A DNA stretch of 64,000 nucleotides from Diplonema japonicum. Taxonomy: Eukaryota; Protista; Euglenozoa: Diplonemea. A program made the translations under genes and the position numbers. The notes beneath the pieces were generated by a model. It had not been told where the DNA came from, searched no databases, and was given only the letters and a program-made list of their open reading frames with translations. This document shows positions 1,367 through 24,360 of this stretch, piece after piece. The stretch is from the NCBI GenBank assembly GCA_964019335.1, contig OZ025712.1:124001-188000 (forward strand), written 5' to 3'. The first letter of the stretch is position 1; every line of letters starts with the position of its first letter.

Positions 1367-2509
1367 TCATCTTGTATAGGCTGGTAACGCGGCGATCTGT
1401 TTTCGGACAAAAGCGAGCTCCTCCTGGTAGCTTTGGCTGGGAGCCTCGCCGGGGGTGCAGGTTTCAGATGGGTCGGAAAAGAAATTGAGAAGCTTGTCCT
1501 TATTCATGGACAGAATTAGCTTGACTTCGTCCGTCTTGTTCGGGTTGCCGACAAACAACTTGAAAACATGGAAAGCTTCGAATTTAATATGTGCGGAGGT
1601 GTCACGGAGCAGGATCATAACCGCCTTGAGGTGCTGCGTCGATTGCGTCACCTTTGTCATAACACCAAAGTTCGATTTTCGAAGCAGCAGCTCACCGAGA
1701 ATTTTCAACGATTGTCGACGTGTCACATAATTCTGCTGAGGTTGCAACAGCTTCAAATACTGACCGAAAAACGGGGTGTAGTGAGCTGTCATATATTCCT
1801 CTGCAATAACCGGGTGTTTTGTCAACGCCTCCTTGAACGTCCAAAACGCATCGCTAGCAACTTCAAAATCTACCACATTGACGTACCTGAAGAATCTACG
1901 GAACAAAGAGCTTTCAAAAAACGCGGGTGTGATCTCTGTGTCTTTAGGGTGGTTGAGAAGTTTTCTGAGAATCGACTCGTGCCTTATCGCCTGTCTCAAG
2001 ATATTCCCGCTGTTTAAGGCTACCGCGCCAAAATTACACCATTCGTAAGCTTCGCAGAGTTGTTGTAAAAGATCGTGGTTGAAGGTCTCCACACCTTTTG
2101 TAGAGTTAGACAGAACGTCTATTAAAACGGCTTCTGTGTCTTTTCTGCACTCGAAGGCTTGAGACCTCAACGAAATGACTAGCATAGCCATTAGTCTGTT
2201 GTCCGATTTTGGGCATACTAGAGTCACCGTTGGCTCGTTGTCAGGTTGGTTAACTATCATCTCCCGAAGGCCGCCCTTGATTTCGGTTTTATCACCCACT
2301 AGCATCTTCCTCACAATGCTTAGGTCCCGTGCTACGTTGCCGCTTGCTTTTTCGTACTCGGGGCCTTCACCTACGCACAGGAGCACGCGGATGTTGTTTC
2401 TGAGTCCCGATACGAGTTCTTGGCAAGCTTTCTCGCATACTGGTAGTTCTTCCGGACAGCATCCTCCCTTTTGCTGCGAACCTTTCGGTGTTGTTGCTGT
2501 TGTTGCCAT
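1367..2509 (-). CDS. MO25: MO25/CAB39-family scaffold protein (380 aa)
   Basis: Motifs FEVASDAFWTFKEALTKH, NYVTRRQSLKILGELLL and IKFEAFHVFKLFVGNPNK are diagnostic of Mo25; single exon. Confidence 0.93.
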   Translation of the reverse strand: MATTATTPKGSQQKGGCCPEELPVCEKACQELVSGLRNNIRVLLCVGEGPEYEKASGNVARDLSIVRKMLVGDKTEIKGGLREMIVNQPDNEPTVTLVCPKSDNRLMAMLVISLRSQAFECRKDTEAVLIDVLSNSTKGVETFNHDLLQQLCEAYEWCNFGAVALNSGNILRQAIRHESILRKLLNHPKDTEITPAFFESSLFRRFFRYVNVVDFEVASDAFWTFKEALTKHPVIAEEYMTAHYTPFFGQYLKLLQPQQNYVTRRQSLKILGELLLRKSNFGVMTKVTQSTQHLKAVMILLRDTSAHIKFEAFHVFKLFVGNPNKTDEVKLILSMNKDKLLNFFSDPSETCTPGEAPSQSYQEELAFVRKQIAALPAYTR

Positions 2510-3572: not shown

Positions 3573-4623
3573 CTACATCATGCCCATCATCTGCTGCTGT
3601 TGCTGCAGCAGGCTCATATGCATCGCAGGGCTATGAGGCAACCCAGTGGTCTATATATATTAAAAAAAAAACTTTTTTTTTTTACACCCACACCTGTGCC
3701 ATCTGCGCCACGTACATCTGTTTCCTGATCTCCGACTGTGCTTGGAGAAGCTGCTGCTGCTGGATCCGCAACTGCTGCAGCTGCATGATAGCTGCCTGGC
3801 GGTCCATCTGCATAGAAAGAGGGGCAACCTGCTGCGGGCTGTTAAAAAAAAAGAAATTCTTTCCCTCCCCATTTTTTTTTTTTTTTTTTTCAACAAAAAA
3901 AAAATACCTTTGCGCACCCCTCATAACATTGTGGGTCAAAGGTGCAGATGAAAGCGGCATCCCGCATTCAACAGGAGGGGGTGTCAAGGAAGCAGTGTTG
4001 TATCCAAGCGAAGAAGCAGGCGAGCGTTGCATAGGCGAAGGCGACGCGCCTGCAGGCTCGTTTTGCTGGGGTGTTTTCAGCCCTGAAGGCACCGTGGGCA
4101 GCAGCTGTGGGGGCTGCTGGGCAGTTTGCGGGGCCTCCTCGTCGAGGGGTTCCAAAGGAGGCGGTGGTGGCTTTGACGGAGTGCTCTCGCGTTTCGTCTC
4201 CTCATTCAAGTCGAGCATCGTGATGAGCTCATCAAAAACTTCACCAGTCTCAAAGGTAGGAGTAACAGGGCCGATGACAACAGGTGGTACCACTGCTTGC
4301 TGGACCAATGCGGGTTGTCCATCACCCCTTACCCTGCCTTCGATGGGCTGCCAAGAGAGCCTTGGCTTTTCCATATCTCTGGCTTTAACGGCTGCCGGCA
4401 GCCTTGGGGGTTTTCCCCCGGATCTCAGTGACAGCTTTTTCAGCTCCAAAAGAGCTCCCTTTTCATATTTGAAAATCGCGGCCGGGTCCTTCCTGGAGAG
4501 GGAGGCGTCGCTCTTGCTGTTTTTGTTCACCCGATCCTCCGTTTTCTCCATGGCCACCTTCTTGGGTACAAACCTCACGCAGTGGCTGTTACCCTGGGGC
4601 TGCTGCCTCACTGGCCGGGGCAT
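3573..4623 (-). CDS. Low-complexity Pro/Gln-rich protein with a canonical eIF4E-binding motif (4EIP-like), 312 aa; exons 4623-3908, 3838-3694, 3650-3573
   Basis: YEKGALL fits YxxxxLphi (4447-4467). GT-AG introns 3839-3907 (69 nt) and 3651-3693 (43 nt) remove poly-K/F junk and restore an in-frame Q/M-rich C-terminus. Confidence 0.6.
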
Positions 4624-6981
4624 CTTTTTGTTTTCAATTTTTTTTTTTTTTTCCTTTTTCCTTTTTGAAACCGCCCGCTCCTGTTTTTTTTTTTTTTTTT
4701 TTTTTTTTTTTTCCCCTCCCGGAAGCTACTTTTTTTATACTTTAAAAAAAAAAAAAAAAGGGTGTGGGCTGGGATTTGGGGTGGGGGTAAAAAAAAAAAA
4801 TGATGATTTTTTTTCTTCTTCGTTCTTTTTTCTTCTTTTTTTTTAGAGAGGAAGAAAAGAAAAAAAAAAAGGGAGGGGAACAAAAAATGGAGAAAGGAAG
4901 TAAAAAAAAAAAAAAAGTTCTTTTTACGTGAGTCATGTAGGAAAGTTAAGCTTTTTGTCTTCTTGCTTTTCCCCCCTTTCCGTCTTTTGGAGCAGGAAAA
5001 AAAAAAGGGGGGTTGGGGAAATGAAAGGGGGGGGGGGGGGGGTAAAGGGGGTGGAAACCTTACGCCACACTCGGAGAAGCAGAGATCACAGGGGGGGGTG
5101 TTACTTTCCCTTATTTCCCATTTTGCTTTCCCTTTTTTTTTTGCCCTAAAGGAAAAAGGAAAGGGGGGGATTATAAGGCATACCTTCAAGGGGTTTTAAA
5201 ACACCTTCAGGGTATAGAACCTTACATTTCTTTTTTAAAAAAAAGAAGAAAGACAAACGGAACGCCACAAAAGAAGAAGGAAAAAGATTTTCTTATGGCG
5301 TGAAACGCAGTTTAGAGGGGTGTGGAAAGGCTTTCAAAAAAAAATAGCAAGGTTGACAAAGATTGAAAGCAAAGGGGGGGGGTAAAAATAATAATAATAA
5401 AAAAAACAAAGAAAGGTTACTTACTTGCCTATTTTGGTCAATTCGGTCAATTGTGGGGGGAACAAAAGCCACTTTTTCTTTGTTCTTTTCTTTTTATCCC
5501 CTTTTGTTTTTTTTTTTTTTCCCTTCTTTTCCCCTCTTCTTTTCTTTTCAATCTCAAAAAAGAGAAGAAAGAAAAGGAAGAAAAAGAAAAGGAAGAAAAA
5601 AAAAAGAAAAAAAAAACAGGGGGGGAAAAATAGAAATAAAGATAAAAAGAAGATGAGTGAGCAGTGTTCACGCGACCCACAAATAAGGGGGGAAAAAAAA
5701 ATGAAAAAAAAAAAGAAAATACTTTTTGGGTGTGGATGACAAAAAAAAAAAAAAATGAAAATGAAGAGAAATTTCTTTTTCTCTACCCTACAATTTAACA
5801 CCTTTTTTTTTTTTTTTTTTTTTTAAATTTAATTCGTCCCAAAGCTGTGCTATTTAGCGAAAGTTATGGGTTTCCTTTTTTTTTTTTTTTTTTTTTCCCC
5901 AAGATTCTTTTTTTTTTCCCCATCCTCTCCCCCCATTTTCCTTTTTTTTTTTTTTTTTAGAAGAAAAAAAAAAAAAAAAAAGGGGTTTATCCTGTTTGCC
6001 CAATGTTCTTGTCCTTACCCCTCTTTTTTTTTCTTTTTTTTTTTTCTTCGTTTCCTTCTTCTTTTCACCCCGTAGTTCGGTCAGAGGCCCCTTCCTGAAG
6101 CTTTTGCTCCCGGTTACAGAAGTTAGTTTTGAATTTTTTTTTCATCCTTTTTTGGCTCTCCTGATTAATGCAGATACACGAACAGGAGGTCTTGAGGAGG
6201 AGAAAAAGAAAACGGAAAAGTAATCAACTTCTTTACCGAGGCTTTCAGAGAAAGAGGGGGGTGAAAGAATCTTTAAAAAAGAAAAAGAAGCGGGTAGGAA
6301 TCCTAGTAGCTACGACAAAAAGGAAGAAGGGGAGGGGGGGGGGGGGGGGTTACATGTAAAGAACAAAAGTCCACAAGAAAAATTTTTTTCTTAAGATCAC
6401 GCGTTATGTGGGGGGGAGGGAAAGGTAGACAAGTATTCCAAAAAATTCATTTTTTTTTTTTACTCCATTTTTTTTTTCTTTTTAATTTTTCTTCTTTCTT
6501 TCTTAATCTTTCTTCTTCTTCTTTTTTTTTTTTTTTTTTTTTTTTTTCTCCGCACACCTGGTTCCTAAAACCGAGTGAAACCGAGAGAAGGAAAAAAAAA
6601 AAAAGAAAAGAAAAGAAAAAAAAAGGTTATTGCGTGTGGAAAAACATTTGTTTTTTTTTTTTCTCTTTTTTCCTTTTAACTTTTATTCTTCTTTTTTTTT
6701 TGAAAAAAAAAGACGGGGGTTTTTTTGCTAAATATGCTTTTGCATACTTGCCCTTTCGTGTTTCCTGTACCCCGTTTTTTTTTTTTTTTTTTTTTTCCTT
6801 CAAAACACAAAAAAAAAAGAAAAAAAAGGGGAAAAAAAAAAAAAAATGTAAGAGAGGAAGATAAAAAAAAAGGGGTGGGGGGAATGAGGTGGAGAAAACA
6901 AAAAAGGGTTACGAGGGGGTTCTGGGATATGCAGAAACAAAAGGAGAAAAAAAAAAACGAATAAACAATCGCTAAATATGC

Positions 6982-7134
6982 TTAGCACAACTTGGGCTTC
7001 CTGTGCACGGCCCTCTTCCTGTTCCAAACCTGGCCAACAAGGGCCAGGCCGTCAATGAAAGCAGTGGTGGGGTTAAGGCAGTTCAGGCAACCAAGCTCCG
7101 ATGCAGAGTAGTCATACGGGTAGGTGTGGTGCCT

Positions 7135-7171
<37 letters not shown>

Positions 7172-8874
7172 CCCAACAAAACAAACCAGTTGTGGTAACC
7201 CTCACCAAGGGCAACAAGGGTGGTAAACCAAGACTCGGTGGGGTACATAGTGGCGGTGTACGGGCGGGCACCGAAGGTGTGCGCCACAGAGTTCACGGTC
7301 CAAGTGGCGTGAAGGCACAACAACCACCTGAAAACACCGAGAAGGGCGAACCCGCCCCAGAAGGCGTCGTACTGGAAGTGGTAGTAGATAGCAGGAAGGA
7401 CGTAGCAGAAGAAGAAGTTCCACCACGGGTCGCACACGTGCTGGATCCACACAAGCGGGTCCGCAAGAAGGTCAGAACAGTCGATCTGCTTACCGGCGTC
7501 CTTGACGGCCTGCCTCTTCTTCAGCAACAACCACCCCATGTGCGAGTAGAAGAATCCCCTGGTGATGTCGTGCGGGTCGGCCTCAGTGTCGGACTTGGCG
7601 TGGTGGACACGGTGGTCCCTGCTCCAGTGGTAGATGGACCCCTGGTTGGCAATCGAGTTGAAGAACTGCAGAAGCATCCTAGCAGGGAAGTGTGCCTTGT
7701 ACGAACGGTGCGACCACAGACGGTGAGCACCAGCAGTGATCCCGATCATGCCTGTCAGGGGGTACAGGATCCATACCTCAGCCCACATCCTGTAGAACTC
7801 TGGCCTGTCCCACGACCAGTACGCACCCCAAACACCGATGATGTGGGACGACACCATGAGGACCACCATTGCCCAGTTGACATCCTTCCACTCCCACTGG
7901 CTCCTTGTGGTCTGGCTGGAGGAGTCGACCTCCTTCAGCGCCTTGAGAAGCTCGCTGGGGCAAGGGTACGTCTTCAGGATGTTCTGGGGGAGTGACACTC
8001 CGTAAGGGCAGTGCCTCAGCTCCTTCACGAGCTCGCACTCCTGCTTGTGGTTCTTGATGCCGACTGTCTCCCACGACACGCCGCCCACACCAGCAGCCTC
8101 CACCTGCCAGACGTCAGCCTTGCCGCCAGCAGCCTTGATGGCCTCCGTGAGGTACTCCTCAGGGGTCAGCTCGGCACCGAACCCGATGGCGCCCTGCCCC
8201 TTGGTCTGCTCGTAGATGGTGTTCCAGTCAGGCTTCTCGTTGTTGTCGTTCTTCGAGGCGACGAGCTCGGCGACCTCGTGGGTCAGGTTATCCGAGTCGC
8301 GGAGGTCAAGAGCCGTCTGGCTGGAGATGCAAGGGATACGAGGACGGGAGAAGGTGATGCCCTGGTTCTTCCACTCTTCTTCGACGTTTCCGTCCTGTGC
8401 CTTGGCGGCGTAGAACGCGGCCTTCACTGCCTTCGCAGCGTGGAGCCCGAACTCGGCGTCAGTGGCGGAGGCGGCGATCGCCACGGCGGAGAGCACACCG
8501 CTCCTGTCACCAGTGGTGGCAACGAACTCCTTGCTGGACTCGTCGAGGCCCTTCCCGCTGTGCTTCATGTGCACGAAGAAGTTGGCCATCTGCGAGATGG
8601 TCGACAGAGAGCCCTCCACAGCGGGCTCCTGGAGCTGCTGCTGCAGGGTGTCCGTCTCGAGGGCCTCGATCAGGTCGAACTTCTTGTGTCCCATCGCCTC
8701 GTCGGCACCCATCAGGTCGGGGTAGCACGCAGAGAGCGCCTCGCCACAAGTGTGGATGAAAGGCCTGATGATGGCGGTGTTTTCCTTGAAAGTGGTGGCA
8801 AGGTCCTGTGCCGTCTTGACACCCTTACCGCTGAAGACTGCGAGCTTCCCCGCAATGCTGTCCATGCTGGTCAT
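6982..8874 (-). CDS. Delta-9 acyl desaturase fused to N-terminal degenerate FAS-I acyltransferase (SAT)-like and ACP-like domains; exons 8874-7187, 7132-6982
   Basis: His boxes HRLWSH, HRVHH and, after removing the 54-nt intron 7133-7186, GEGYHNWHH; SDTEADPHD..RGFFYSHMGWLL. The N-terminal ~315 aa resemble AT and ACP domains. Confidence 0.88.
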
Positions 8875-9042
8875 GATGAAAAAAAAAAGTGAAAAAAAAG
8901 GTGTGTAGGGTAGATATGAAAGATAACGTCCTGAGTTGAATCATTTAATTCTTTTTTTTTTTTGAACCCCCCCCACACTGCTGGAAAGAAGAAAACAAGA
9001 AAAAAAAAGAAAAAAGAAAACTCACGTAGAAACGCAAAGAAT

Positions 9043-9519
9043 CTATTGAAGGGTGTAAGACAGCGAAACCTCTGAGAGAAAGGTGGTAAAGGGTGTCTGC
9101 AGGGAAGTCATGCGATTTGCCTCAAGGCGTGTGAGGAGCCGTCCCTCGTCCTCTCGTAGCGAGGTTGTGTGGATTCTGATGCTGCCGTAAGTACTTCGAA
9201 AGATGGCTCCAGCACAGCTAGCAGCTACCCCACTGCATAATGAGAGGAGAACCAAGGAGAGTCTGGTCTGCTGGTCAAGTTGAAGCTTTGCAGCCAAAAC
9301 TTCTTCGTCATCGGTATTGTCGTCACCGCTCGTGCTCATGAGCTCCAGCTGCGGGGCCTTCTTTTCCAATCCACACAACACTTTTAGTTTCTGTTCAGCA
9401 GTCATCATCACCCAGATGTCGCCGCAGATTTTTTTTGCGTTCTCCACCGTGAGCCAAGTAGCCTCCAACTGTTTCATGGTGGCCGCCACACGCATTTTCG
9501 ATTCCTCCTTGCTTTCCAT
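9043..9519 (-). CDS. Hypothetical protein (158 aa) with one hydrophobic segment
   Basis: Mixed-composition ORF from MESKEESK between homopolymer spacers; same strand as its neighbours. Confidence 0.6.
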   Translation of the reverse strand: MESKEESKMRVAATMKQLEATWLTVENAKKICGDIWVMMTAEQKLKVLCGLEKKAPQLELMSTSGDDNTDDEEVLAAKLQLDQQTRLSLVLLSLCSGVAASCAGAIFRSTYGSIRIHTTSLREDEGRLLTRLEANRMTSLQTPFTTFLSEVSLSYTLQ

Positions 9520-9701
9520 TGCCCGCCTTTTTCCTTTTGAAAAAAAAGGGGGGGGGGCTTGTCGAAACAAACAATAAAGAACATTTGTAATCAAAAATTT
9601 TTTTTGTATAATACATAAAAAGCTTTTTTTTTTTTTTTTTAAAATAGAAAATTGGAAAAGGGAGAGTGAGAAAAAAAGAAGAAAAAAAAAAAACGGGTGG
9701 G

Positions 9702-12909: not shown

Positions 12910-15900
12910 CTACATCAAGATCAAGAAGCAGCATAAGAGGAGTACAAGGAAGGGAGACGACCGTGATACGGATTCGATAGGGAGGGGTGGGGGTCCAGGA
13001 CGGGGCGTGGCTGCAAAGGGGAGGGGTGTTGGCGGGGGCGTCCTAGGCGAGGGGGTGGCTGGGTTGGGCGGTGAGAAGGTAGAGACAAGTGCACCCGGAA
13101 AGGACGAGTTGGATAGCACAGCAGGAAGACTGCTTAGCAACGTAGATACAGCACCAGACGTGGCATTCCTAGGGAAGACAAAATACACTTCGAGGAGCGT
13201 GGTGCACCCGTCCCGACAGCTGACATCAACAACAACACCATTCCTCCTTTCAACACATGCCCCTTGGGTCTTTTTATGCAAAGGTGTGATGCCGTATGCG
13301 ACCTTGCTGACGGACACCCTGCAGGCCCACCTGACGTCCACCCCCTCCACACTGCTTCCTAACAAAGCCTGCAGATCCGCTTCCATCCCAGTGAAGTTGA
13401 CGGCCAGCAACGGTGTGTCCCCCACGTCGAGCATACAACCGGGGTCATCAAACACAGAGGGCACCGTTGCCAATGGTGAGGGGGTCTGTGGGAGGATCGT
13501 GTTCCCCACTTCAAAGACACTGCTATTTACCGTGATTGACGCCCCGCTCGAAACCACAGCAGCCACCGTCAGGTACGCCCGTTCACACAGCCCGTCAAAG
13601 GCGAGCCCTGACCAGACCCCACTGCCCTCTACCAGCGCTGTCATGTCCCACCCGCCAGTCCCGTCCACCAACCCATTCACGTATTTTCCTATGTAAAAAT
13701 TCCCGGTTTTGTTGCTGTCAAGACAGTGCGTCGACAGCACGGCATGTCCGCCCGACTCCCCTAAAAGAGCCTTCCCCCTAGAGTCTGCAGCGGCCACTGG
13801 TAGTGAAAACACCGTCCTCGGCAGCACCCTCAACGACGTCAAGATCCCCGACCCCGGGTCCGCGTGCTGCCTCTCCGCGGTCACGTTGCGGAACACACCT
13901 TCTTCAACCAGTACACACGTCTCCTTGTCGGTGCACGTTGCGCTTTGCAACAGTACTTGAGTGTATGACTGGAACCCCCAGTGAACTGTGGCAGGGGGAA
14001 GTCCGTCAGCGTGGAAAAAGAGTCCATGGAGGCCTTCGCGCGTGCCTGTGTACGTGAGGGTTTGCACGGTGGTTGTACCGTTTGTGATGGGGATCCATTC
14101 ATCCCCTGACCACAGGGTGTCGTGCATCCTGCACACGGGCTCCTCGAGTGGTAGGCACGCCCCGTTTGTGACACACGTCTCGGCAACGTACGGCGGCTGC
14201 CCTGCCCTGTCCACCGTGATGCAAGGAATCAGTGTAGGCCTCACCTGCAGCATGCCGTCCCATGCCTCCACCACAGCCCCAAAAGGATCTACCGCACCAA
14301 CCTTGACTTCCATAGAGTTCCCTACAACCCACCACCCTTGTGGGGATTCAATTTCCAGCCGGACTGGCACCCTGATCACATCTACTGACAGCTTTAAGGG
14401 AACGCCTATAATTCTGCCAGACGGGTCTGTGCCAGTGATCCGTATCATCGCAGACGGGAGGTGCTCTTCAGTCAAAACAAGCCACACGGAGGCAACGCCC
14501 GCAGCGACCGTAGCGTTCACAACCACAGCATCTGTAGAAGTGACAATGCGGGTAGAAAAATCACCCTTACAGATACCCCCGGGGGAAAATACCGCCACAG
14601 GAAGCTCAAATGGCACACCGACAACGGCCTCCAGAAGTGGCATGGGGAGGAGCGCAATGGTGGTCGCCTCTGAGACTACAAGGGTGAGGGTGCTGGGCGG
14701 TGTGGTCAGTGAAGGGAAGCCGGTGAGCGTCACGCTGCACTCGCCTGCTGTGGTGAACGATCCGTTGAACGCGACGGCAGTAGCTTCTTTGTTTAGGATG
14801 CTGGCTGAAGTCTGCATGAAGCACCCATCGGGCACCGACACGGCGTGCAGCAACGCAAGGCTTGTCCCGTTCCAATCAACAAATGACACCTCGGTCCACA
14901 TCTCCGACTTGAAGATGTCGTTGTTGACGGCCCTCACGATGAACTCCGTCTTGTATCCTAGCATGGCGCTCACGTTGCCTACGTACTGCCACGCGGTTAC
15001 GCCGATGGGCTGGATGAGGATGTTCGTCTTCATTGTCCAGTTGCCGTGTTTGAACAGCACGGTGCAGGACCCTGTCCCTGAGGGCATCAAGATGTTGAAG
15101 GCAGTGTGTCCAGTGTTGATCTGAACATTTGTGTCTGCCTGGAACTGGCACACTCCAGAGACGTCCCTGCACAGGCTGCAGTCCCACTCGGCAGTGATGT
15201 TGCCGGATGCCTCGCCTACCACGACCTCCTTTGGGACCACTGACTCGTTGTTCATGAGCACAGTGTACACATCGATAGTAGCAGCGTGGTTTGTACGGAT
15301 GGAAATGTCACCTGCAGGCGCCACAGCTAGCATAGTGGCGGGCTTGGGGTGCTTCAAAAGAACGGGTTTGCCTTCTGTGTCTACCGTAGGTAGACGTCCC
15401 CACCCTTCTCCGTGCAGCATCAGCTCGTAGCCCAGGGATGGCGTGCCAGACATGACGCCCTCTATCACACCGACGCGCCATGGCCCTGTCCCCTTCCCTA
15501 CTGCCACACCGTTGTACATTTTCTCTTTGATCGTCACTGTCGGGTTGCCTCTTGTGATGATCACATTCTCGCCTTTGACAGTTCCTAGTGTGGTGTTCGT
15601 GTTGAAAGGAAGCACCGTGAGGCTCACGCCGGGCATCACCTTCTGTTCGTACACACGCTGTTCCAGTAACCCCGTGGGACCACCCATGCCGTATGCTCTG
15701 TTGCCGTCACTGTCTGCAGCATATACCTCGCACGTGAAGGTGTCACCCGACAGCTGCACGTGTTGCACCACATACACAACGGGTTCGCTGTAGACAGACA
15801 CCTGCTGCTGCTTCCCCATCACGGTGGCCCTGCATTTTTGGCACGCTTTGTCATACGTCAACACAGCGGTGGAAGCACCATCCGACGACCGCTGAAGCTG

Positions 15901-18900
15901 CGCCATGACATGTCCCCCACCTCCGTTGGAGCCCTTGTACAGGTTTAGTGTAATAGTGGCATTGCTTGCGTCGTTCCAAACAGGGTTGCCGTTCCTGTCA
16001 GTGGGAACAACTGATATCGAGAAAGGCCGACGGCGTTGCACTGTAGCAGGGGGGTGGCCGAGAACAGCCCAGTCAAATGCGCAAGATCGCACGTTGAAGA
16101 CCAGCACATGCCCAGGGATGCCGTTCGAGAAGCTCCGCAGCGGAACGGTAAGCGAGTGTCTGCTGTTAATATCTACCTGCAGGATCACAGCACACCCACT
16201 GCATTGCTGAGTGAAATGGAACACCAGCGAGCCATCACCAGCGGTCGACGTCACTGCCAGCGTCTCCGAGGCGCTCTGCGGCTGACACTTCTCGGTCAGC
16301 CCCTCGCCCATTGCCCCTCCATGACCATGCTGCACTGTTTCCCACTCGAAACCCTTATCAGGGTGCTGCCATATTGAAAGCACACGTATTGTCACGTTAC
16401 TAGCGACATTTATTGGGAGCGGCCAGGTGTTGAAATCTTCCGCCAGCTGCCAGCGCAGTGTGATGGGCTCCCCAACGTGGATTACATTGCCTGAGCTAGA
16501 CAGCTCTTGATGCGTGACGAGGAAGGAGTTAGGCTCTGGCTTCCCTATGGTGATGCTTTTAGTGACATGCACTCTGTGGTGGTAATCTGGGCCACTGGCG
16601 TCGGGGGTGCCTTCTAAGCACTGCTTGGCGGAGGTCGCTGCTGAGTAGCAAAGTGTAAACTCGAGTGTGCAGTGTTGGCACGGAGATGTGAAAAGCGGCC
16701 ACAAAACGGCCACACCATTAGTGACCCTGCCTGTCGTGATGCGTGTGAAGGAGTCGGACATCGTGCCGAGAAACGGAGTGCTTGTCTCCCCACCAGGCCT
16801 TAGTGTGTACAGCTGCAACACACCACCGTCATTACAACCAGACCAAGAGTGCTTTTTGACTGTGATCAACATCCCACTAGAGCTCCAAGCCCTGCCCCCG
16901 TGATGGCCTATAAGGGTTGTTTGCACTGGGAAGGGTACTCCTGCCACACCATGACCGTAGCTCCATCCGTTACCAGGAACTGCCTCGAAGTTCGCGTAAT
17001 GCCCCGTGTCTCTGGCCATAAGCCGCACCCGAGGGCATTCTTCTTCGTCATCCACCGTATGCTGCACTACCCATTCATTGTACGGGGTGTCACTTGGGTA
17101 CCCCCAGCTGTGCGTGCTTGCCGTCCTTCCTACCCCCTGCACATCGGGCCTCCATACAAGAAACGGTGCCGCACTGCTCGCCGTCCATGCACCGGTGAAG
17201 GTGAAGACAACGACCCCACTGCCGGGTGAGAGCAACCTGTCGTGATAGGCAGTTGGGAGCTGAGTACTGCGGGTAAGCATTGACGTTATGTTTATCGCAT
17301 TGTCAGCAGAGGTGTCCACGTCAACAAGCGGGACCCGTGCTGAAGAGCCGTGTCTGAGGTAGTAGGTAGCGGGCTTGTCATAGACGATCTGCTTAGTGCC
17401 AAACCAGTAGAAATACATTGCAGCATGAAGTGAGATGACTGTTGCTGTACCGCAGGGGGAGCCCACGGCCGACCCGGGTCGGAGGGCTGCTTCAGAAAGG
17501 TTTTTTTCGTTCACAAAACCAACAAGAACATCGGGATGGGGGTCATAGGTGGTATCCACGACCACCCATAAACGGAGCATGATGCATGTGGTGCTTAGCT
17601 GCGCCCCATTGTGGAGACAGACCTCGACCTCCGCATCACGCATGGGGTTGATGCTGGGGTACCCCCTGCCACGTTGCACCGTTTCGAACTTCATGGTCAC
17701 CATCGTGGTGTTCACTTGCTCGTAGGTCACACTATTGTTGCCGTACCCTGCTTCGCTCCCATTGCTGCTGACCACTGTTTCATAGGTAGATGCAACGTAT
17801 ACTGTGGTTCCGATGTCTTGCACTGAGATAGGCTGCGAACCCACGATGCGCACTTCCGTGACTGATGTGTGTGTCATCCACATGAGGCAGCCCCCCGTTG
17901 TGTCGTTGCACAAGGGTGTACACTCAGGCAAGGTCACTCCCCATCCTGTAGTCTTGTTTTTCGTTGTGTGCGCCGCCATTTCTATGTTGATCGCTGTCGT
18001 GCACGGCATCCCGTTAACGTCCAGCAGCACTTCGTCACTCAGCTTATCAACAGTGCCGTTCAGCACATAAAGTCCATCTTGCGCCACGATTCCGTACCCA
18101 CCTGATGTGGTGGTGTTGCGAACGGCAACCACATGCGCAGGGTACGTGTTGATGAGGTCGAGTCTGCTGAGCCGAACGATCGTGATCGAGAATGGCTCGC
18201 TCTGTGAGTTCCCTGTGAACCACATAACTGGTGAGGGTGCGGCACATGTCACCTTTGACGTGTCGTCGGTGAAGTTGTACGTGAGCAGCTCGTTGCTTGT
18301 TGCACCCCACGAGGTATGGAAACTGAAGGAGCAGAGAACACATGGTGTCGTTGGCCTGATGATCACATCAGCGCCATACAACCCGGTGCCAAGAGGCTGC
18401 AGCTCCCACTCAGGCTGCGCCAGGGTGATGTTCTCTCCGTTTGTGCCCACGACAACCCGTCCGTAGTGGAATTCATCAGCGTAAAAATTGCTATCATGGA
18501 ATGCTCCGGGAAGGACGCGGACCACAGCACCTGAACGGAGTGTTGCCGACCACTCGGTGACGCCCCGCACGGGCAGAACTTGTAGTGTGGTGGCCACTAC
18601 CCGTACAGGTGTGCGGACACGTGCATAGCTGGCCTGCGGCGTTCCCTTTCTATGCAAGACCAGTGCAATGTCGCACCCTTGTTGCGGCTGAAATCGCGTG
18701 CAGCCCACGTTGTTCAAGACACGGAACTCGACAGAAAACACAGCAGGGGTTGATCCGTCCTTAGCAGTTGCTGTGCCAACCCTCAAGCTTTGCGCATATC
18801 TTACAAACGTCATCAGGTTCTCCTCCAACAATTTTCCGTCCTGTCCTTTCTGCACCTCGACAAACGCTGCTCCAGTAAGGACCACTTCGTACCCAACAAG

Positions 18901-21900
18901 ATTACTGCCCACCATTACGCTGCCTGCAGAGTCCACCACTTCATACGAAATCGCATAGGGGTACAAGGCTTGCAGATAGCTCCCTTGAGCAGCGGTGAGG
19001 GTCTCCGACGATCTACCAGCGAATTGTGTTGTGGGAAGCCATTGCGGGGGCTGGATGCCTTCCGAAAGGCCGAGATCCATCTTTTGCATCTCTAAAATTC
19101 TCACTTTCTTCGGAAGGTTCCGCGTCACAAGGACTGCGTACGTGGTGAAGACGCTTTGAGACTCACCAAAGCTGACGTTGAAATATACAGTAGCCTCGTC
19201 TGTGAAGAAGTCATTGAACGCAGGGACGAAGGTGTGGTTGTAATACCCGCCGGGTAGCCAAGTGGCATTGGAAACAATGCCGAATGAAGCATGGAGGGAG
19301 ACGGGGGATGCAGCCGTGATGGAAAGGTTTCCAATGGGGGCGAACTCTCTGGGTCCTTGATACCTAGCGAACAACCTTGTGAGACACGGCTTTGCGTCCC
19401 AGCACTCGAACAGTGGACACGACGGATTGCCAACACTGCACGCTGCACCAACCTGAGAAGGTACTGCTGTGACATCATTCACAAATACCGCATCTGGCGC
19501 ATTTGACGCGACGTTAAGCCATACAGGCGAAGAGGCCACCTCGGACAAACTCCCTCTGAGGTTGCCCGGCTGGTGACCAGGAGGAAGCCCCACAAACAGA
19601 AACCCACAGCCAGGGTTCGGCAACCGTTGGTTAACAGGGCAGCCGGACTTAAACTGTATTCTGAACTCCGCGACACCTGAAACAAGGAACTGTTGCAGTC
19701 CGTCGCTGCCCCAGTCATACAGACCCCCCTCCGTGTTCTTGCACCCACCGTCAACACCTTCAATGACAAACAGGTCACGGGGCGTAGGTTTGTGACAGTT
19801 CATCTCAGCCCACGATAACCCCGCCGGGCATTGTACCACCCAAACAGGGAACTCGCCATATGGTACCACCCTCCCTCCAGAGGTGGGTTTCACCACAAAA
19901 GAGACAACGCCGCCAGAAGTCACCACAGGTGTGCTGGATGCTATGTCGGTGACTTTCCCGTAGGTGCCCTCGGTCGTGTCGCTGAATACAGAGAATTGCA
20001 CGCTCTCGTTGTAATCCAGCTGCACCTGCACGTCCAGGCCGTCGATGACGCCGGTGGCACGGTAGAAGATGGTCCCCTTCCCCGTGGCCGTGTCTCCGTT
20101 GTTCTCCAACACATAAACCTTGTTCCCGGGGAGTGCCGATGGGGCTGAGGCACGTTTGTCACCAGCTTTGTAGAGGCAGATCTTGTACAGGTCCACGGGG
20201 GAAGGGTATGTAGGTGGGAGGATGAAGCTTGGTTGTATCGGACGTGCTGTGGCAGAGCTTGCTGCAAGAGCGTACCATCCAGGGGAGTTCCCGGTGCTGT
20301 TAGCAGGGACAGGGCAGTCAGAAGTTGAGTTTGCGATATGCACGAGATCCACACCTAATCCGCAATCGATGACCCCGCACCAGCTTGCGCCTTGAGGGCT
20401 GGAGTCGTACGTCACCAAACTGTTCAGGCCCCCTATGTATGCAAGACTTGTCTTGACCACCTTGAAGCTCCTGTCGACGCCTCCTTCTACTTCGAGCCAC
20501 GGGAGACCTGTATCTTGCTTGTAGCACAGTTTGTACATGTTCACGTCGTTGGGGAACTGCGTGCGTAAGTACACGAGCAGGCCGTCGCTCGTTGAGTTAT
20601 CGTGCACCAAAGCTGCGGTGTGACCATGGGTGTCGTCGGTACAGGGCCGAGCAGCAAGAACGAGCTTTGCTCTGTGGCGCTCTATACCGTGGGGTGGCTG
20701 GAATAGACTGATAAAGAAGCCTGTGTTGAGCGAGAGAGGTGTTGACGTCGAGAGGCCAGAGAACACCTGCGGAGGACCTGGCAGGGTGGTATTTTGAGGT
20801 GATTGGAAGTCCGCATCAATACTCCAAGATTTCACCCCTGAAGGGATAGAGAGGAAGTCCACTCGGCGGGGAGAGGCTTCAAGCCAGTGCCTCTGCACAT
20901 TCCCGTCTGCATGGGTGACGGTCCACACACAAATTTTGAACCTCCTTCGCGCGTCTAGGTACCCTTGTGGGATTCTGAAAGTCATTGTTGCCTCAGACAC
21001 CTTACCGTCAGACGGACCAAGATCGCTTTTGAGGCCGCCCACACCGCTGCTCTCCCCGTGCGCACGCATCCCCACTGTGTCACGCCCCCCATGGCAGCTG
21101 TCTTCATCTACTACGACCTTTGCTGCGTCCTCCCCGACCCCAACTGAGAACACTTCGAGGTCTGTGTCTTTCGTCATCCCGACTGTCACCACAGCCTGAC
21201 TCAGCAAAACGTCCCCCACGTCCCACCACACGCCGTTTTTCTCTGACGTATAAGGCCCGAAGCGGTGCCAGGAGTGAACCTCGTCAAGCTGAAAGCAAAG
21301 AAAAAACTCGCCAGAAGCAGCCGGCACCTCGAGGTAGAATGAAAGATGGTTGATAGTTGTGCCTGCACGTGAGTCAGTTGTATACGCTCCGAAGGGGACC
21401 GACGGTGTGTCGGCAGGCGGCGAATGGCATGCTGTGTCACTAGGTACGAACTTGGCCTGAAAAGTTGGGAAGAACGATCGCGTGGAAGAGTCGGTAATGT
21501 CTCGCTCTGTCACCATCTGTGCCTGATTGGACAACTGGCCTTGTGCACCTGTCCATGTCCCACCAGCTTCTAGCTCCACAATCACATCACCGGTGGGAAG
21601 GAACCCCGTAACACCACCAAAGCCCGCGTCTGTCTTGACACGAGTCCCTATTGCGAGGAACGGTGAGGACCCAGGGTACCATGGCTGGTTGGTGTACCGC
21701 GACATCCGTGCGTCAGACCTGACCTCAAACCTCATGAGGGTGCCGCCGATAAGCACCTTGTCACCTACGGGGGAGACGGTCACGTCACTGGGAGGTGCAA
21801 TCCATGTGTCATTGAATGTGGCCCAGTTCGAATACACAGCCTGCTTGTAGCACATCTTGTACAAACCAGGGCTAGGGAGAACAAGGTCAGCAACAACTTG

Positions 21901-24360
21901 CTGCACGTCAGGGGCTTCTATATCTCCAGGCACCACGTCGTCATAAGGGTGCCGCATTGCTGCTTCATACAGGACAAGCCTTCGCTGGTCCTGTCGAAGC
22001 ACACGCTCTGTTAGGCTAGCGCAGGGCTCAGCTCCTGTCGCACCCGATGCATTCCCACTAAGGCAGAAAAGAGACAGTTGTGAGTCTCCTGTAGCCGGGT
22101 CCCAGTTCGCTGCGATGTCACATTCCTGCTCGCGTGGCACTATTCTGAATACATCGCTCCCTGCATAGAGACGCGACTCAAGCGCGTCGGTGATGAGCAC
22201 CATGGTGTCCATGCCAGAGCGTGTCTCGCGTAGCTCGACGGTCACGTTGCTGGGGGGGGTCACGACAAGTCCGGGTGACGCAGCAACCTTCCAGTTCTCC
22301 TTCCCATACTGCACGCACAACTTGAACGGGTTCAGCGCCTCGTAGGGCACTGTGATGAAGTACGCATGCGACGTGTGCTCCGATGTGTCTGCGGAGCCCA
22401 GGCACCCTGCATCGGGTGTGCACTCTGGCTGTCCTCCGCGGCTGCTCTCAGCTGCAAAGCTTGCACTGTGGTATTTCCCAAACTCATCCCAGCTGCATGG
22501 CATGCCAGCAGGCACCACGCGAACTCTCATCCCCAAAGCTGCATGCCAACTCCACTCCCCACCTGCTATGGGCCCTGTCTCGTTCCAGTGGTACACCACA
22601 ATTTGTCCCCATGTGCCTTCTCTCGTATCATTCATAGACCATGCTGGTGGCCGTGTCTCGTTGACGGTATCGTACGTGCCTGAGGCCAGGAGGTACGTCT
22701 GAGGGTAGTCGGCTATCGGACTGTAGTCAGTGTGCTGTTGGGTGTCCCATTCCAAAATGTTCCACCCCCCCAGCATGCTCCCTCTCCTATAGCACACGTA
22801 GTACGTGTCGTTGGGCGCTGTGAAATAGATCGACGTCGCGAACCCATACAAGAGGGAGCTTCCGTCGCTGTTTGCGTCGTAGTAGTGTCCTGTGAGGTCT
22901 TTGGAACCTGTAGTGTGGCTGTGGGGCGACGGGTCGGAGCTCCAAGACCCTGAAGCGTGCCAGCAGCCAGGCTCGGTGTATGTGTTTGGCACCGTTGCGA
23001 AGTACTCAGAACTGACTATTTTGAGGGCATCACCTCCTTGAGGCAGCCAGTTGTGTTCGACATGTCTCTTCCTATTCACGCCTACACCAGACACCCTGAG
23101 GTCCCCCCAAGTGTAGGGGGTAAGCCTTGTCGCGGACCACTTGTATGCAACAGGGGTGGTGGTGAAGTGGAGTGATGATGAAGAGGGTGCCGCACATGAG
23201 GGAGAACTGCAGGGCCACAATTTCCTCCACACGGGGATGGAGGCGATGGAGTTGTTTTGGGTGACAAGCAGAGCGCGCTGCCGCCGGGAGGAGAAGCAAA
23301 CATCAAAATTTTCAACGCTCCTAGGCAGCTGCACGTACGCGTACCCTGTCTTCACCACGCCACCGTTGTGCTCCGTGTCCGTGTCGTTCACCCCAGCCAG
23401 CCCTTCGCCGATGAAAGGGTTCAGTTCTATAGTGCCGAACACCGCTGCACCCCCTTCGGTTGCACCGACAATATTTCTCCCTTCAGCCCACAGTCCATCG
23501 GCTTCGACATGTCTCGACCCTCGGTAGACACCGTTGTACGTCCTGCTCTCTGCTGTACAGGGCGTACCCTTTTTGACAATCTTCAAGCTGTCTCCCTTGT
23601 AGGTGAAGTTCCATTCCGGCTCCATAGAGTTCACCTGCACGATGGTATATTGCATCACGGCGGCGGGCTGAGGGATGTAGTACCAAGCAAGGCTTCGCTC
23701 GGGTGTAAAGATATAGGACCCGTTCCCTTCCCGAGCGGTGTCGATAAAAGCTGTCCACCCGATGGGCCCCGTGACGTGTTGGTACTCCGGGGAAAAGTCG
23801 TGGCTGTAGCAGATAACGAACGGAACCTGGGGTGCTTCAAATGTGACAAACAAAGTATCTGTGAAGGGCGAAGCGATAGGGTACCCGAACCCATTGATAA
23901 GCGAGAGAGGCTCTTGCATCGCATGGTAAGCAGTACAATTGGCAGAGAGAGTAGGGGAGTAGGCGAAAAGCTCTGTTTGGAAAGCTGCGTCGTCCGACGT
24001 ATTGACGATGAAGGCGGGCCGGCTGTCGTACCAGTAATGCAGCTGGAGGCGAAGCTCCTGCCCTTCCTTGAACCTTTCGGGGTCTAGGCGCATTGTCACA
24101 TTGTCGTATACTTCTATGCTTCGCGTATAACTTTCCGTCAGCGTCTCGGACTTCGTCACAGAGTAACTCTCAGTCTCTGTCAATGAAGGTGTGTGTGTGA
24201 CGCTTGCAGTCTCGCTCCTACTGTAGCTCGCAGTCCTTGTCGGCTCCGTCAAGCTCGCCGAGGAGGTCCCAGTTCCCAGTGTAGCTGTAAACGTCTCGGT
24301 CCTTGTCCCCACACTGTAGCTCACAACCCACGCCAGCGCGAAGAGAAGCCGTCTGTCCAT
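12910..24360 (-). CDS. Giant secreted/GPI-anchored surface protein (3816 aa, single exon)
   Basis: N-terminal signal MDRRLLFALAWVVSYS, Thr/Ser-rich linker, recurrent (Y/F)xxC(Y/F/V) and CxxC modules, Pro-rich stalk, hydrophobic C-terminus PFLVLLLCCFLILM. Confidence 0.85.
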   Translation of the reverse strand: MDRRLLFALAWVVSYSVGTRTETFTATLGTGTSSASLTEPTRTASYSRSETASVTHTPSLTETESYSVTKSETLTESYTRSIEVYDNVTMRLDPERFKEGQELRLQLHYWYDSRPAFIVNTSDDAAFQTELFAYSPTLSANCTAYHAMQEPLSLINGFGYPIASPFTDTLFVTFEAPQVPFVICYSHDFSPEYQHVTGPIGWTAFIDTAREGNGSYIFTPERSLAWYYIPQPAAVMQYTIVQVNSMEPEWNFTYKGDSLKIVKKGTPCTAESRTYNGVYRGSRHVEADGLWAEGRNIVGATEGGAAVFGTIELNPFIGEGLAGVNDTDTEHNGGVVKTGYAYVQLPRSVENFDVCFSSRRQRALLVTQNNSIASIPVWRKLWPCSSPSCAAPSSSSLHFTTTPVAYKWSATRLTPYTWGDLRVSGVGVNRKRHVEHNWLPQGGDALKIVSSEYFATVPNTYTEPGCWHASGSWSSDPSPHSHTTGSKDLTGHYYDANSDGSSLLYGFATSIYFTAPNDTYYVCYRRGSMLGGWNILEWDTQQHTDYSPIADYPQTYLLASGTYDTVNETRPPAWSMNDTREGTWGQIVVYHWNETGPIAGGEWSWHAALGMRVRVVPAGMPCSWDEFGKYHSASFAAESSRGGQPECTPDAGCLGSADTSEHTSHAYFITVPYEALNPFKLCVQYGKENWKVAASPGLVVTPPSNVTVELRETRSGMDTMVLITDALESRLYAGSDVFRIVPREQECDIAANWDPATGDSQLSLFCLSGNASGATGAEPCASLTERVLRQDQRRLVLYEAAMRHPYDDVVPGDIEAPDVQQVVADLVLPSPGLYKMCYKQAVYSNWATFNDTWIAPPSDVTVSPVGDKVLIGGTLMRFEVRSDARMSRYTNQPWYPGSSPFLAIGTRVKTDAGFGGVTGFLPTGDVIVELEAGGTWTGAQGQLSNQAQMVTERDITDSSTRSFFPTFQAKFVPSDTACHSPPADTPSVPFGAYTTDSRAGTTINHLSFYLEVPAASGEFFLCFQLDEVHSWHRFGPYTSEKNGVWWDVGDVLLSQAVVTVGMTKDTDLEVFSVGVGEDAAKVVVDEDSCHGGRDTVGMRAHGESSGVGGLKSDLGPSDGKVSEATMTFRIPQGYLDARRRFKICVWTVTHADGNVQRHWLEASPRRVDFLSIPSGVKSWSIDADFQSPQNTTLPGPPQVFSGLSTSTPLSLNTGFFISLFQPPHGIERHRAKLVLAARPCTDDTHGHTAALVHDNSTSDGLLVYLRTQFPNDVNMYKLCYKQDTGLPWLEVEGGVDRSFKVVKTSLAYIGGLNSLVTYDSSPQGASWCGVIDCGLGVDLVHIANSTSDCPVPANSTGNSPGWYALAASSATARPIQPSFILPPTYPSPVDLYKICLYKAGDKRASAPSALPGNKVYVLENNGDTATGKGTIFYRATGVIDGLDVQVQLDYNESVQFSVFSDTTEGTYGKVTDIASSTPVVTSGGVVSFVVKPTSGGRVVPYGEFPVWVVQCPAGLSWAEMNCHKPTPRDLFVIEGVDGGCKNTEGGLYDWGSDGLQQFLVSGVAEFRIQFKSGCPVNQRLPNPGCGFLFVGLPPGHQPGNLRGSLSEVASSPVWLNVASNAPDAVFVNDVTAVPSQVGAACSVGNPSCPLFECWDAKPCLTRLFARYQGPREFAPIGNLSITAASPVSLHASFGIVSNATWLPGGYYNHTFVPAFNDFFTDEATVYFNVSFGESQSVFTTYAVLVTRNLPKKVRILEMQKMDLGLSEGIQPPQWLPTTQFAGRSSETLTAAQGSYLQALYPYAISYEVVDSAGSVMVGSNLVGYEVVLTGAAFVEVQKGQDGKLLEENLMTFVRYAQSLRVGTATAKDGSTPAVFSVEFRVLNNVGCTRFQPQQGCDIALVLHRKGTPQASYARVRTPVRVVATTLQVLPVRGVTEWSATLRSGAVVRVLPGAFHDSNFYADEFHYGRVVVGTNGENITLAQPEWELQPLGTGLYGADVIIRPTTPCVLCSFSFHTSWGATSNELLTYNFTDDTSKVTCAAPSPVMWFTGNSQSEPFSITIVRLSRLDLINTYPAHVVAVRNTTTSGGYGIVAQDGLYVLNGTVDKLSDEVLLDVNGMPCTTAINIEMAAHTTKNKTTGWGVTLPECTPLCNDTTGGCLMWMTHTSVTEVRIVGSQPISVQDIGTTVYVASTYETVVSSNGSEAGYGNNSVTYEQVNTTMVTMKFETVQRGRGYPSINPMRDAEVEVCLHNGAQLSTTCIMLRLWVVVDTTYDPHPDVLVGFVNEKNLSEAALRPGSAVGSPCGTATVISLHAAMYFYWFGTKQIVYDKPATYYLRHGSSARVPLVDVDTSADNAINITSMLTRSTQLPTAYHDRLLSPGSGVVVFTFTGAWTASSAAPFLVWRPDVQGVGRTASTHSWGYPSDTPYNEWVVQHTVDDEEECPRVRLMARDTGHYANFEAVPGNGWSYGHGVAGVPFPVQTTLIGHHGGRAWSSSGMLITVKKHSWSGCNDGGVLQLYTLRPGGETSTPFLGTMSDSFTRITTGRVTNGVAVLWPLFTSPCQHCTLEFTLCYSAATSAKQCLEGTPDASGPDYHHRVHVTKSITIGKPEPNSFLVTHQELSSSGNVIHVGEPITLRWQLAEDFNTWPLPINVASNVTIRVLSIWQHPDKGFEWETVQHGHGGAMGEGLTEKCQPQSASETLAVTSTAGDGSLVFHFTQQCSGCAVILQVDINSRHSLTVPLRSFSNGIPGHVLVFNVRSCAFDWAVLGHPPATVQRRRPFSISVVPTDRNGNPVWNDASNATITLNLYKGSNGGGGHVMAQLQRSSDGASTAVLTYDKACQKCRATVMGKQQQVSVYSEPVVYVVQHVQLSGDTFTCEVYAADSDGNRAYGMGGPTGLLEQRVYEQKVMPGVSLTVLPFNTNTTLGTVKGENVIITRGNPTVTIKEKMYNGVAVGKGTGPWRVGVIEGVMSGTPSLGYELMLHGEGWGRLPTVDTEGKPVLLKHPKPATMLAVAPAGDISIRTNHAATIDVYTVLMNNESVVPKEVVVGEASGNITAEWDCSLCRDVSGVCQFQADTNVQINTGHTAFNILMPSGTGSCTVLFKHGNWTMKTNILIQPIGVTAWQYVGNVSAMLGYKTEFIVRAVNNDIFKSEMWTEVSFVDWNGTSLALLHAVSVPDGCFMQTSASILNKEATAVAFNGSFTTAGECSVTLTGFPSLTTPPSTLTLVVSEATTIALLPMPLLEAVVGVPFELPVAVFSPGGICKGDFSTRIVTSTDAVVVNATVAAGVASVWLVLTEEHLPSAMIRITGTDPSGRIIGVPLKLSVDVIRVPVRLEIESPQGWWVVGNSMEVKVGAVDPFGAVVEAWDGMLQVRPTLIPCITVDRAGQPPYVAETCVTNGACLPLEEPVCRMHDTLWSGDEWIPITNGTTTVQTLTYTGTREGLHGLFFHADGLPPATVHWGFQSYTQVLLQSATCTDKETCVLVEEGVFRNVTAERQHADPGSGILTSLRVLPRTVFSLPVAAADSRGKALLGESGGHAVLSTHCLDSNKTGNFYIGKYVNGLVDGTGGWDMTALVEGSGVWSGLAFDGLCERAYLTVAAVVSSGASITVNSSVFEVGNTILPQTPSPLATVPSVFDDPGCMLDVGDTPLLAVNFTGMEADLQALLGSSVEGVDVRWACRVSVSKVAYGITPLHKKTQGACVERRNGVVVDVSCRDGCTTLLEVYFVFPRNATSGAVSTLLSSLPAVLSNSSFPGALVSTFSPPNPATPSPRTPPPTPLPFAATPRPGPPPLPIESVSRSSPFLVLLLCCFLILM

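Follow-up and report, generated by a model that had tools for sequence, protein, structure and literature searches.

An inactivated acyltransferase fold heads a stearoyl-CoA-type desaturase in diplonemids and may serve as a docking module

The 64,000-nucleotide (nt) stretch of Diplonema japonicum DNA analysed here (contig OZ025712.1, positions 124,001 to 188,000 of the forward strand; hereafter the window) encodes, at 6982-8874 on the minus strand, a membrane fatty-acid desaturase with a large N-terminal module. That this is one gene, trans-spliced at 8931/8930, cis-spliced once and encoding both halves on a single messenger RNA, is virtually certain. The N-terminal domain has the fold of fatty acid synthase (FAS) acyltransferases (AT) and is very probably a catalytically dead pseudoenzyme; the C-terminal part belongs to the stearoyl-CoA desaturase (SCD) type. 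The best overall explanation, in which the gene carries this dead module as a docking device, is put forward tentatively. A sequence-only reading of the same DNA had already proposed a dead type I FAS (FAS-I) AT-like domain fused to a desaturase, and that core proposal is upheld by profile, structural and transcript evidence.

The open reading frame (ORF) comprises 630 codons, with its stop codon at 6982-6984. Its GC content is about 0.6, and AT-rich spacers full of homopolymer runs lie on either side. The sequence-only reading took the ORF as continuous and in doing so missed an in-frame GT..AG intron of 54 nt (7133-7186, minus strand, as are all features of the gene), which splits the third histidine box, GEGYHNW/HHTYPYDY. 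The DNA at the intron edges reads ...CACAACTG/GTTTGT...(A-run)...ACAG/GCACCAC..., and most of the intron is an A-run of more than 30 bases. Because no stop codon lies inside it, the intron is hidden from ORF finders. If retained, it would add 18 amino acids (aa) within GEGYHNW-HHTYPYDY; the mature protein is therefore 611 aa long, not 630. Coding exon 1 (7187-8874) specifies residues 1-562 and two bases of W563, as defined by the ORF, by the colinear orthologues P0001 and P0003 described below and by continuous complementary DNA (cDNA) contigs. Coding exon 2 (6985-7132) supplies the last base of W563 followed by HHTYPYDY...KLC, in agreement with the orthologues. Transcript-derived orthologues are continuous across the third box (GEGYHNWHHTYPYDY), and the ENA gene model of an orthologue runs into an intron at the same point.

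Public contigs aligned to positions 6700-9100 provide the transcript evidence. Two cDNA-like contigs, X1 (2048 nt) and X2 (1933 nt), cover 6863-7125 and 7186-8931/8870, and at the intron both have 6 letters in place of the 60 in the window, exactly 54 fewer. X1 matches the window as far as 8931, beyond which it has 25 further letters, whose reverse complement is AAAGCTACAGTTTCTGTACTTTATT. Followed by GT, this string occurs 202 times genome-wide, against 0 occurrences of a reversed control, which identifies it as the 3' part of the spliced-leader mini-exon. The AG acceptor for trans-splicing, defined by the end of X1, lies at 8932-8931, 56 nt upstream of the ATG. The mature 5' untranslated region (UTR) thus starts at 8930 and occupies 56 nt (8875-8930), and the 3' UTR can be followed over 6863-6981, to the limit of the cDNA-like contig. 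The junction of the two protein halves is spanned by cDNA contigs of three studies, and in those cDNA-like contigs neither a spliced leader nor a break was found between the halves; the leader is present at the 5' end only. A trans-splice site separating the N-terminal region from the desaturase was specifically looked for, and the acceptor was found upstream of the ATG instead. X1 and X2 come from relatives about 98% identical to the assembled strain, and the run type of X1-X3 was only guessed to be RNA; these contigs are taken as RNA-derived because spliced-leader addition and intron removal arise only from RNA. Short-read DNA contigs of the assembled strain itself break at the A-run of the intron. 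The spliced-leader motif is also seen elsewhere: its 202 copies are dispersed across most contigs, often near contig ends, and one copy of the mini-exon 3' end with its GT donor lies in the window at 39958-39985 (minus strand; G000:C65:163958-163985).

Residues 1-232 (8179-8874) form the AT-fold domain. They match the Pfam SAT profile PF16073 with an E-value of 3e-13 when the whole ORF is searched and 3.7e-14 when aa 1-235 are used (50.4-53.4 bits against a cut-off of 22.8). The match spans aa 13-159 and, of the 239 profile positions, takes in only 2-146. For aa 1-330, AlphaFold2 run on an alignment of 11 sequences gave a model with a predicted local distance difference test (pLDDT) score of 82 and a predicted template modelling (pTM) score of 0.84. 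The top structural matches of this model found with VIA were all AT domains of fungal FAS beta subunits (Z 23.7-21), the best being residues 144-540 of the Candida albicans subunit (Z 23.7, root-mean-square deviation 3.5 Å over 248 aligned residues). They were followed by SAT domains of non-reducing polyketide synthases (NR-PKS; Z about 19) and by FabD-type transacylases (Z about 16-17; E. coli FabD 16.7). Foldseek returned a probability of 1.00 for the AT-fold model. The N-terminal region was thus found to have a strong AT structural match. The earlier suggestion of a relic from a polyketide synthase (PKS) or FAS module finds support as far as a FAS-type AT is concerned, but not for a specific origin in a PKS module, the AT part being closest to fungal-type FAS.

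The genome contains its own fungal-type FAS-I, a single frame of about 4,100 aa with fused beta and alpha parts (G000:C10:~392840-405227, minus strand; L005, L006), which matches FAS_N, SAT and FAS_AT_central. BLASTP against this protein (E 1e-6) aligns VFSGKG with VFGGQG and TTGDRSGVLSAVAIAAS with STGHSQGVLAAVVVAAS. A hidden Markov model (HMM) of the fusion family adds the pairs IPCISS..DLR and MPVLST..DLR, and ..GFG and VLDFGP, so that the four similarities to the fungal Fas1 AT noted in the sequence-only reading all hold against the organism's own enzyme. The FSGKG loop (aa 14-18, 8821-8835), as seen in both BLASTP and the family alignment, is the counterpart of the AT oxyanion loop FGGQG. 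HMM positions 10-156 correspond to FAS residues 166-318 and positions 157-226 to FAS residues 442-515. For FAS residues 319-441, the ferredoxin-like small subdomain, the family HMM alignment contains no counterpart, as had been predicted, and the PFHS segment with the catalytic histidine falls inside this missing stretch. At the site of the deletion the model shows a single unbroken helix (139-158).

The nucleophile elbow is lost as well. GDRSG (aa 122-126), found at 8497-8511 exactly as first read, replaces the GHSxG motif, and the elbow is G-D-[R/Q]-x-G in all relatives but one, the fragment P0006, where V replaces the first G. Arg or Gln therefore stands at the nucleophile position. The genome's own FAS-I keeps an intact STGHSQG. 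Five residues (A12, F14, G16, D123 and G126) are conserved over both types of desaturase fusion described below, the first three being nearly invariant. No alternative Ser or Cys conserved across the family was found, apart from S136, which was counted as invariant. Since the nucleophile serine, its partner histidine, the small subdomain and the catalytic-His segment have all been lost, the N-terminal domain is very probably an AT-fold pseudoenzyme and not an acyltransferase.

The helical segment that follows (aa 233-325, 7900-8178) is more ambiguous. The sequence-only reading had described it as acyl carrier protein (ACP)-like, and this holds at the level of the fold. Modelled alone, aa 233-330 gave a structure of moderate confidence (pLDDT 69), for which ACP and peptidyl carrier protein (PCP) structures made up nearly all of the top 50 Foldseek matches among 350,000 chains (E 0.4-3). 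With VIA against 48,161 chains, carrier proteins again filled almost the whole of the top 50, the Lsd14 ACP coming first (Z 8.0, 79/86 residues), and Z was 5.8 at rank 50; a Z of about 8 lies in the range that VIA calls non-decisive for helical bundles. Sequence profiles gave no such signal. PP-binding (PF00550), searched at E-values up to 10, matched neither the window piece nor five orthologues, and the desaturase locus is not among the 37 PP-binding matches of the genome. A comparison of the segment with 24 PP-binding domains of the same genome by hhalign gave a probability of 0.6%, and an HMM built from the genome's own PP-binding domains was likewise negative on it. Look-alikes of aa 233-322 in the ESM Atlas, scoring 0.82-0.84, were at chance level and included a few MAT/FAS_AT_central clusters and no PP-binding; they were not used as evidence. 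As a side observation on carrier domains in this genome, one frame of 21,455 aa at G000:C96:~228000-291000 (minus strand) holds at least 20 PP-binding domains and represents a giant megasynthase gene resembling nonribosomal peptide synthetases and PKSs.

Where a carrier protein would have its serine, the motif is GIKNHKQ (aa 272-278, 8041-8061), with N275 in its place, so that the claimed absence of a carrier serine there was correct. Across the sequences compared, the N275 position is N, S, S, T, S and D, and the alternative S267 position is S, S, S, S, A and L. The corresponding motifs in orthologues are GLDSR, GITSD, GVKST, GVKTS and GITDE, the D. papillatum protein having GLDS exactly at the place of the lost serine. 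Part of the segment may belong to the preceding domain: aa 233-263 would fit just as well as the helix and strand that end the AT fold at its C-terminus (compare DFGPGGVSGCGKLVHHNVDGTGTQVLISG of the organism's own FAS), in which case the remainder would be a three-helix linker, and alignments of the 330-aa model with stand-alone AT structures reach residue ~324. The segment is 38-42% identical to those of Flectonema and P0002 (32-69% over aligned relatives). Because profile support and a conserved serine are both lacking, the term ACP-like is kept for the fold only; there are about even odds that the segment is truly ACP-derived. In Diplonema japonicum it is certainly not a functional carrier. 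Together with the lost catalytic elements, the absence of a conserved carrier serine means that the module would perform neither acyl transfer nor acyl carriage.

The exon-1 part of the desaturase half comprises aa 326-562 (7187-7899) and includes the first transmembrane helix (TM1) and what follows it. The full set of di-iron ligands is present (HxxxxH, HxxHH, NxxxH and HxxHH): HRLWSH at aa 384-389 (7708-7725), HRVHH at aa 421-425 (7600-7614), the NSVAH motif at aa 528-532 in exon 1, and HNW/HH, which is completed across exons 1 and 2 by removal of the intron. Residues ~333-562 align with mouse and human SCD1 over 230 residues; phmmer gave an E-value of 2.1e-56 to mouse SCD1 (4ymk_A; 17-246 of the query against 46-273), and a family profile search reached 1.8e-78. 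Over 1,200 homologues were found at E < 1e-20, many annotated as stearoyl-CoA Delta-9 desaturases with about 50% identity, and the closest named relatives bear stearoyl-CoA or Delta-9 desaturase annotations as well. Cytochrome b5 (PF00173) was matched neither in the protein nor in full-length orthologues, and none of the 53 b5 matches of the genome falls at the desaturase locus 6982-8874. The earlier description of an intact three-His-box desaturase lacking cytochrome b5 was therefore accurate, the third box being complete once spliced. The Pfam FA_desaturase profile (PF00487) matched neither the window ORF nor its exon pieces owing to the intron and to truncation, as the spliced orthologues pass it (P0001 with 38.5 bits and P0003 with 43.6, against a cut-off of 29.7). 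An NCBIfam search of the ORF returned nothing useful. By these features, the C-terminal 285 residues are a conventional di-iron SCD-type desaturase with predicted Delta-9 regiospecificity. It is an ordinary member of the SCD family and must receive its electrons from a separate cytochrome b5. No other SCD-type locus is present in the 62.5-Mb assembly, and this one is therefore presumably the cell's working Delta-9 desaturase.

Comparison of the window with the ~98%-identical cDNA contigs revealed 16 synonymous and 2 replacement differences in aa 1-325, and 13 synonymous and 5 replacement differences in the desaturase part. The N-terminal module is, on these counts, under purifying selection and at least as constrained as the enzyme. 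The GC content of third codon positions (GC3) is 0.85 in the AT-like part, 0.84 in the middle segment and 0.80 and 0.76 in the two desaturase exons, versus 0.55-0.63 in four neighbouring ORFs. The bias towards C/G-ending codons over the whole ORF, pointed out before, is thus real, and it is compatible with high expression.

The nearest relatives are complete ORFs of 609 aa in Trinity transcripts of Diplonema ambulator (P0001, 77% identity) and Flectonema neradi (P0003, 60%), both with SAT and FA_desaturase matches; a genome-derived protein of an ENA contig is also close. The D. papillatum orthologue KAJ9460102.1 (P0004) is 53% identical, and in Sulcionema specki both halves lie on one transcript. 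A phmmer search with aa 1-316 against 1.84 billion representative proteins (E < 1e-3) yielded 8 matches only: six were of the diplonemid type, all without GHSxG, and the others were a fungal-type FAS (E 7e-4) and a SAT fragment. Among these representatives the fusion family is confined to diplonemids, and none was found in which an intact GHSxG or DSL is fused to a desaturase. The N-terminal HMM also had no match in the six frames of 75 environmental SCD loci from metagenome contigs. Public records of the gene are fragmented. KAJ9460102.1 is listed as 'hypothetical protein DIPPA_29628', a model that ends within an intron beyond TM2; another D. papillatum contig bears, as a model of its own, a partial 'Delta(9) desaturase fat-7' (P0004 and P0016 being the orthologue models). 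The two halves in Sulcionema specki (P0006, P0015) were called as two ORFs on one transcript, Locus_77.

The same dead AT, likewise without the small subdomain, also occurs in a second architecture, where it precedes a FAD2-type desaturase bearing the boxes HECGH and HHKHH. The elbow of these fusions is GDRHG, GDRQG or GDRPG, and most of the middle segment is absent. They include the D. japonicum locus L003 (G000:C83:9718-13176, minus strand, protein start L003:1977), which has GDRHG and an intron after ...HVPNHRNGM, as well as P0007, P0009, the Flectonema transcript P0012 (614 aa) and ENA contigs. That both architectures have the deletion and the D-R/Q substitution in common speaks for a module that arose once and was then transferred to a second desaturase. 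At least 11 loci of the genome encode desaturases; cytochrome b5 stands at the N-terminus in five, the dead AT module in two, and about four have neither. A full-text literature search found no description of a desaturase-acyltransferase fusion, and the main diplonemid genome and metabolism papers contain no mention of desaturases. The novelty thus lies in known domains brought together in a new, lineage-wide architecture with a putative function.

A third degenerate AT-like gene (L004/L008, G000:C10:483583-485314, minus strand; SAT E 1.4e-9) lies ~80 kb from the FAS gene. It keeps a part resembling the small subdomain, has GKGML in the place of GHSxG, and the end of its last exon reads ...FTDSLSAM..LPPTLLIMCPTVAALMEV, a motif of the DSL type that has no Pfam PP-binding match. 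The next gene is cyclophilin-like by eye, and no desaturase follows. As a source of the module it was set aside, being only remotely similar (E 0.13) and lacking a downstream desaturase.

Several known systems share features with this protein. To our knowledge, cytochrome b5 is the one kind of fused accessory domain known from membrane fatty-acid desaturases. SCD1 resembles the protein over a 230-residue alignment, with all His boxes, the NSxAH motif and, as in animals, no fused cytochrome b5. However, the N-terminus of SCD1 is short (~45 aa) and disordered, whereas a folded module of 325 aa is found here. Fungal Ole1 and front-end desaturases fused to b5 also place a soluble accessory domain on the cytosolic side of a membrane desaturase; in the diplonemid protein, by contrast, that domain is an inactivated AT fold without a haem-binding motif or b5 match. 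The ATs of fungal-type FAS-I beta subunits and the SAT domains of NR-PKSs (PF16073) are its best matches in sequence and fold, CTB1 and PksA SAT domains scoring Z ~19, yet here D-R/Q replaces the nucleophile and its His neighbour, the small subdomain and catalytic-His segment are deleted, and the domain stands outside any synthase. Megasynthases themselves contain enzyme folds kept as scaffold or docking surface, such as the pseudo-ketoreductase and pseudo-methyltransferase of animal FAS and the AT-docking remnants of trans-AT PKSs. Unlike those remnants, which remain within their megasynthases, the diplonemid module has moved onto membrane desaturases. As for ACPs and PCPs (PF00550), aa 233-330 alone show a carrier-like arrangement of helices, as in the Lsd14 ACP, but profile similarity and a conserved serine are lacking and part of the segment may be AT fold.

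The N-terminus of SCD1 (PDB 4YMK, 4ZYO) is cytosolic, and acyl-CoA enters and cytochrome b5 docks on that same face. The diplonemid protein is a predicted 611-aa membrane protein of endoplasmic reticulum (ER) type, and by homology with SCD1 its N-terminal 325 residues are probably cytosolic; the module would therefore sit ~10-15 residues from TM1, on the acyl-CoA and b5 face. There it may act as a non-catalytic docking or assembly device. The old active-site face, which comprises the FxGxG loop together with the elbow G-D-[R/Q]-x-G and lies open now that the small subdomain is gone, would have become a surface for binding a partner and bringing it to the cytosolic side of the desaturase. The partner might be the electron donors, or the desaturase that acts next in the pathway, as in a Delta-9/FAD2-type pairing. 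Since the same dead module is carried by a FAD2-type desaturase, its role should be common to both enzymes. Action as a simple substitute for b5 was rejected because several desaturases of the genome have neither b5 nor the module.

Docking is the tentative choice over ligand binding, by a small margin. A protein partner is preferred to acyl-CoA because half of the substrate cleft is gone and because the module heads two desaturases whose substrates usually differ. Several points nevertheless weigh against a docking device. The proposal draws on loss of catalysis, conservation and presence on two desaturases, and the conserved loops of the old active site could equally hold CoA, pantetheine or an acyl chain. 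About four desaturases manage with neither cytochrome b5 nor the module, and the cDNA evidence comes from close relatives rather than from the assembled strain. The strongest competing view is that the AT remnant, perhaps with the carrier-like helices, is a ligand-binding pseudoenzyme for acyl-CoA or acyl-pantetheine, which would either hand over substrate or sense saturated versus unsaturated acyl-CoA to tune activity or turnover. This view stays close to the acyl-CoA sensing or channelling suggested by the sequence-only reading. It would account for an AT fold retained at high predicted confidence and under purifying selection next to TM1 of an enzyme that uses acyl-CoA, with the Gly-rich loop and elbow lining the AT active site still conserved. 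Pseudoenzymes of the alpha/beta-hydrolase fold such as ABHD5/CGI-58 do bind long-chain acyl-CoA as regulators. However, in every AT half of the substrate cleft is contributed by the small subdomain, which is deleted here, the His segment has gone with it, and an Arg or Gln side chain occupies the nucleophile position. Moreover, the same module heads a FAD2-type desaturase, a class that in most eukaryotes acts on acyl chains bound to phospholipids and not on acyl-CoA. Ligand binding is therefore considered rather unlikely, though it deserves more weight than any of the remaining alternatives. Among these, an improbable variant of docking is that the AT core, together with the carrier-like helices, is an AT:ACP complex frozen within one molecule and turned into a shared handle, by which the Delta-9 desaturase and the FAD2-type one would assemble with one another, or else with FAS or its ACP. 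Were this true, new 16:0 and 18:0 would be channelled straight to 18:1 and 18:2 synthesis, in a new coupling of a cytosolic megasynthase to ER desaturases.

A neutral relic, that is a decaying leftover of gene fusion acting at most as spacer or folding aid, would fit the loss of the catalytic residues and of a whole subdomain, as well as the variability of the middle segment between genera. Decay is hard to reconcile with a full-length extension kept in Diplonema, D. papillatum, Flectonema, Sulcionema and environmental relatives on two desaturases, with the ratio of synonymous to replacement changes given above, or with a compact, confidently modelled fold whose codon bias is as strong as that of the desaturase half; this view is slightly less probable still than the shared handle. 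A cryptic enzyme is very improbable. It would transfer or hydrolyse acyl groups via S125, S136 or a Cys, with a carrier-like segment phosphopantetheinylated in some species, and it could invoke the invariant S136, the retention of S125 among the closest Delta-9-type sequences and the GLDS of the D. papillatum orthologue. Over the family, however, position 125 varies among S, E, Q, H and P, conservation is lacking at both candidate serines of the helical segment, and the His partner and any PP-binding profile signal are missing. Finally, diplonemid genes are transcribed polycistronically, and in the records of D. papillatum and Sulcionema the gene appears as two models, which might suggest mis-assembly or read-through of two adjacent genes. 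Such an artefact has a negligible chance of being the explanation: the frame is single and continuous with uniform codon usage, complete 609-aa ORFs occur in independent Trinity transcripts of two genera, cDNA contigs of three studies cross the junction with the spliced leader at the 5' end only, and the split models end where reading enters introns.

Other genes in and around the window were surveyed in passing. The ORF at 1370-2509 (minus strand) encodes a Mo25-like protein. Those at 3685-4623 and 9046-9594 (both minus strand), as well as the 3,816-aa ORF at 12913-24360 (minus strand), have no Pfam match at E <= 0.001. All four lie on the strand of the desaturase, which fits one polycistronic unit. 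Upstream of the window, two cytochrome-b5 matches with identical scores are found 14 kb apart (C65:63904-64122 and C65:78350-78568, minus strand), each in an open frame of 652 aa; they look like a recent duplication.

For annotation, the immediate consequence is a correction, as the public D. papillatum record presents the N-terminal part as a 'hypothetical protein' in a truncated model. D. papillatum has been described as genetically tractable (PMC8611851), and the question of the module is therefore directly testable there. In evolutionary terms, the module offers a clean case of a pseudoenzyme in which a megasynthase domain has been recycled outside its synthase. An ecologically dominant group of marine protists thus appears to carry an inactivated FAS acyltransferase on its only SCD-type Delta-9 desaturase and on a FAD2-type desaturase. 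This would be a new kind of desaturase accessory domain, maintained by purifying selection. It points to an additional layer of control or assembly where the degree of membrane unsaturation is determined, which may be relevant to organisms whose range extends from surface waters down to the cold deep ocean.

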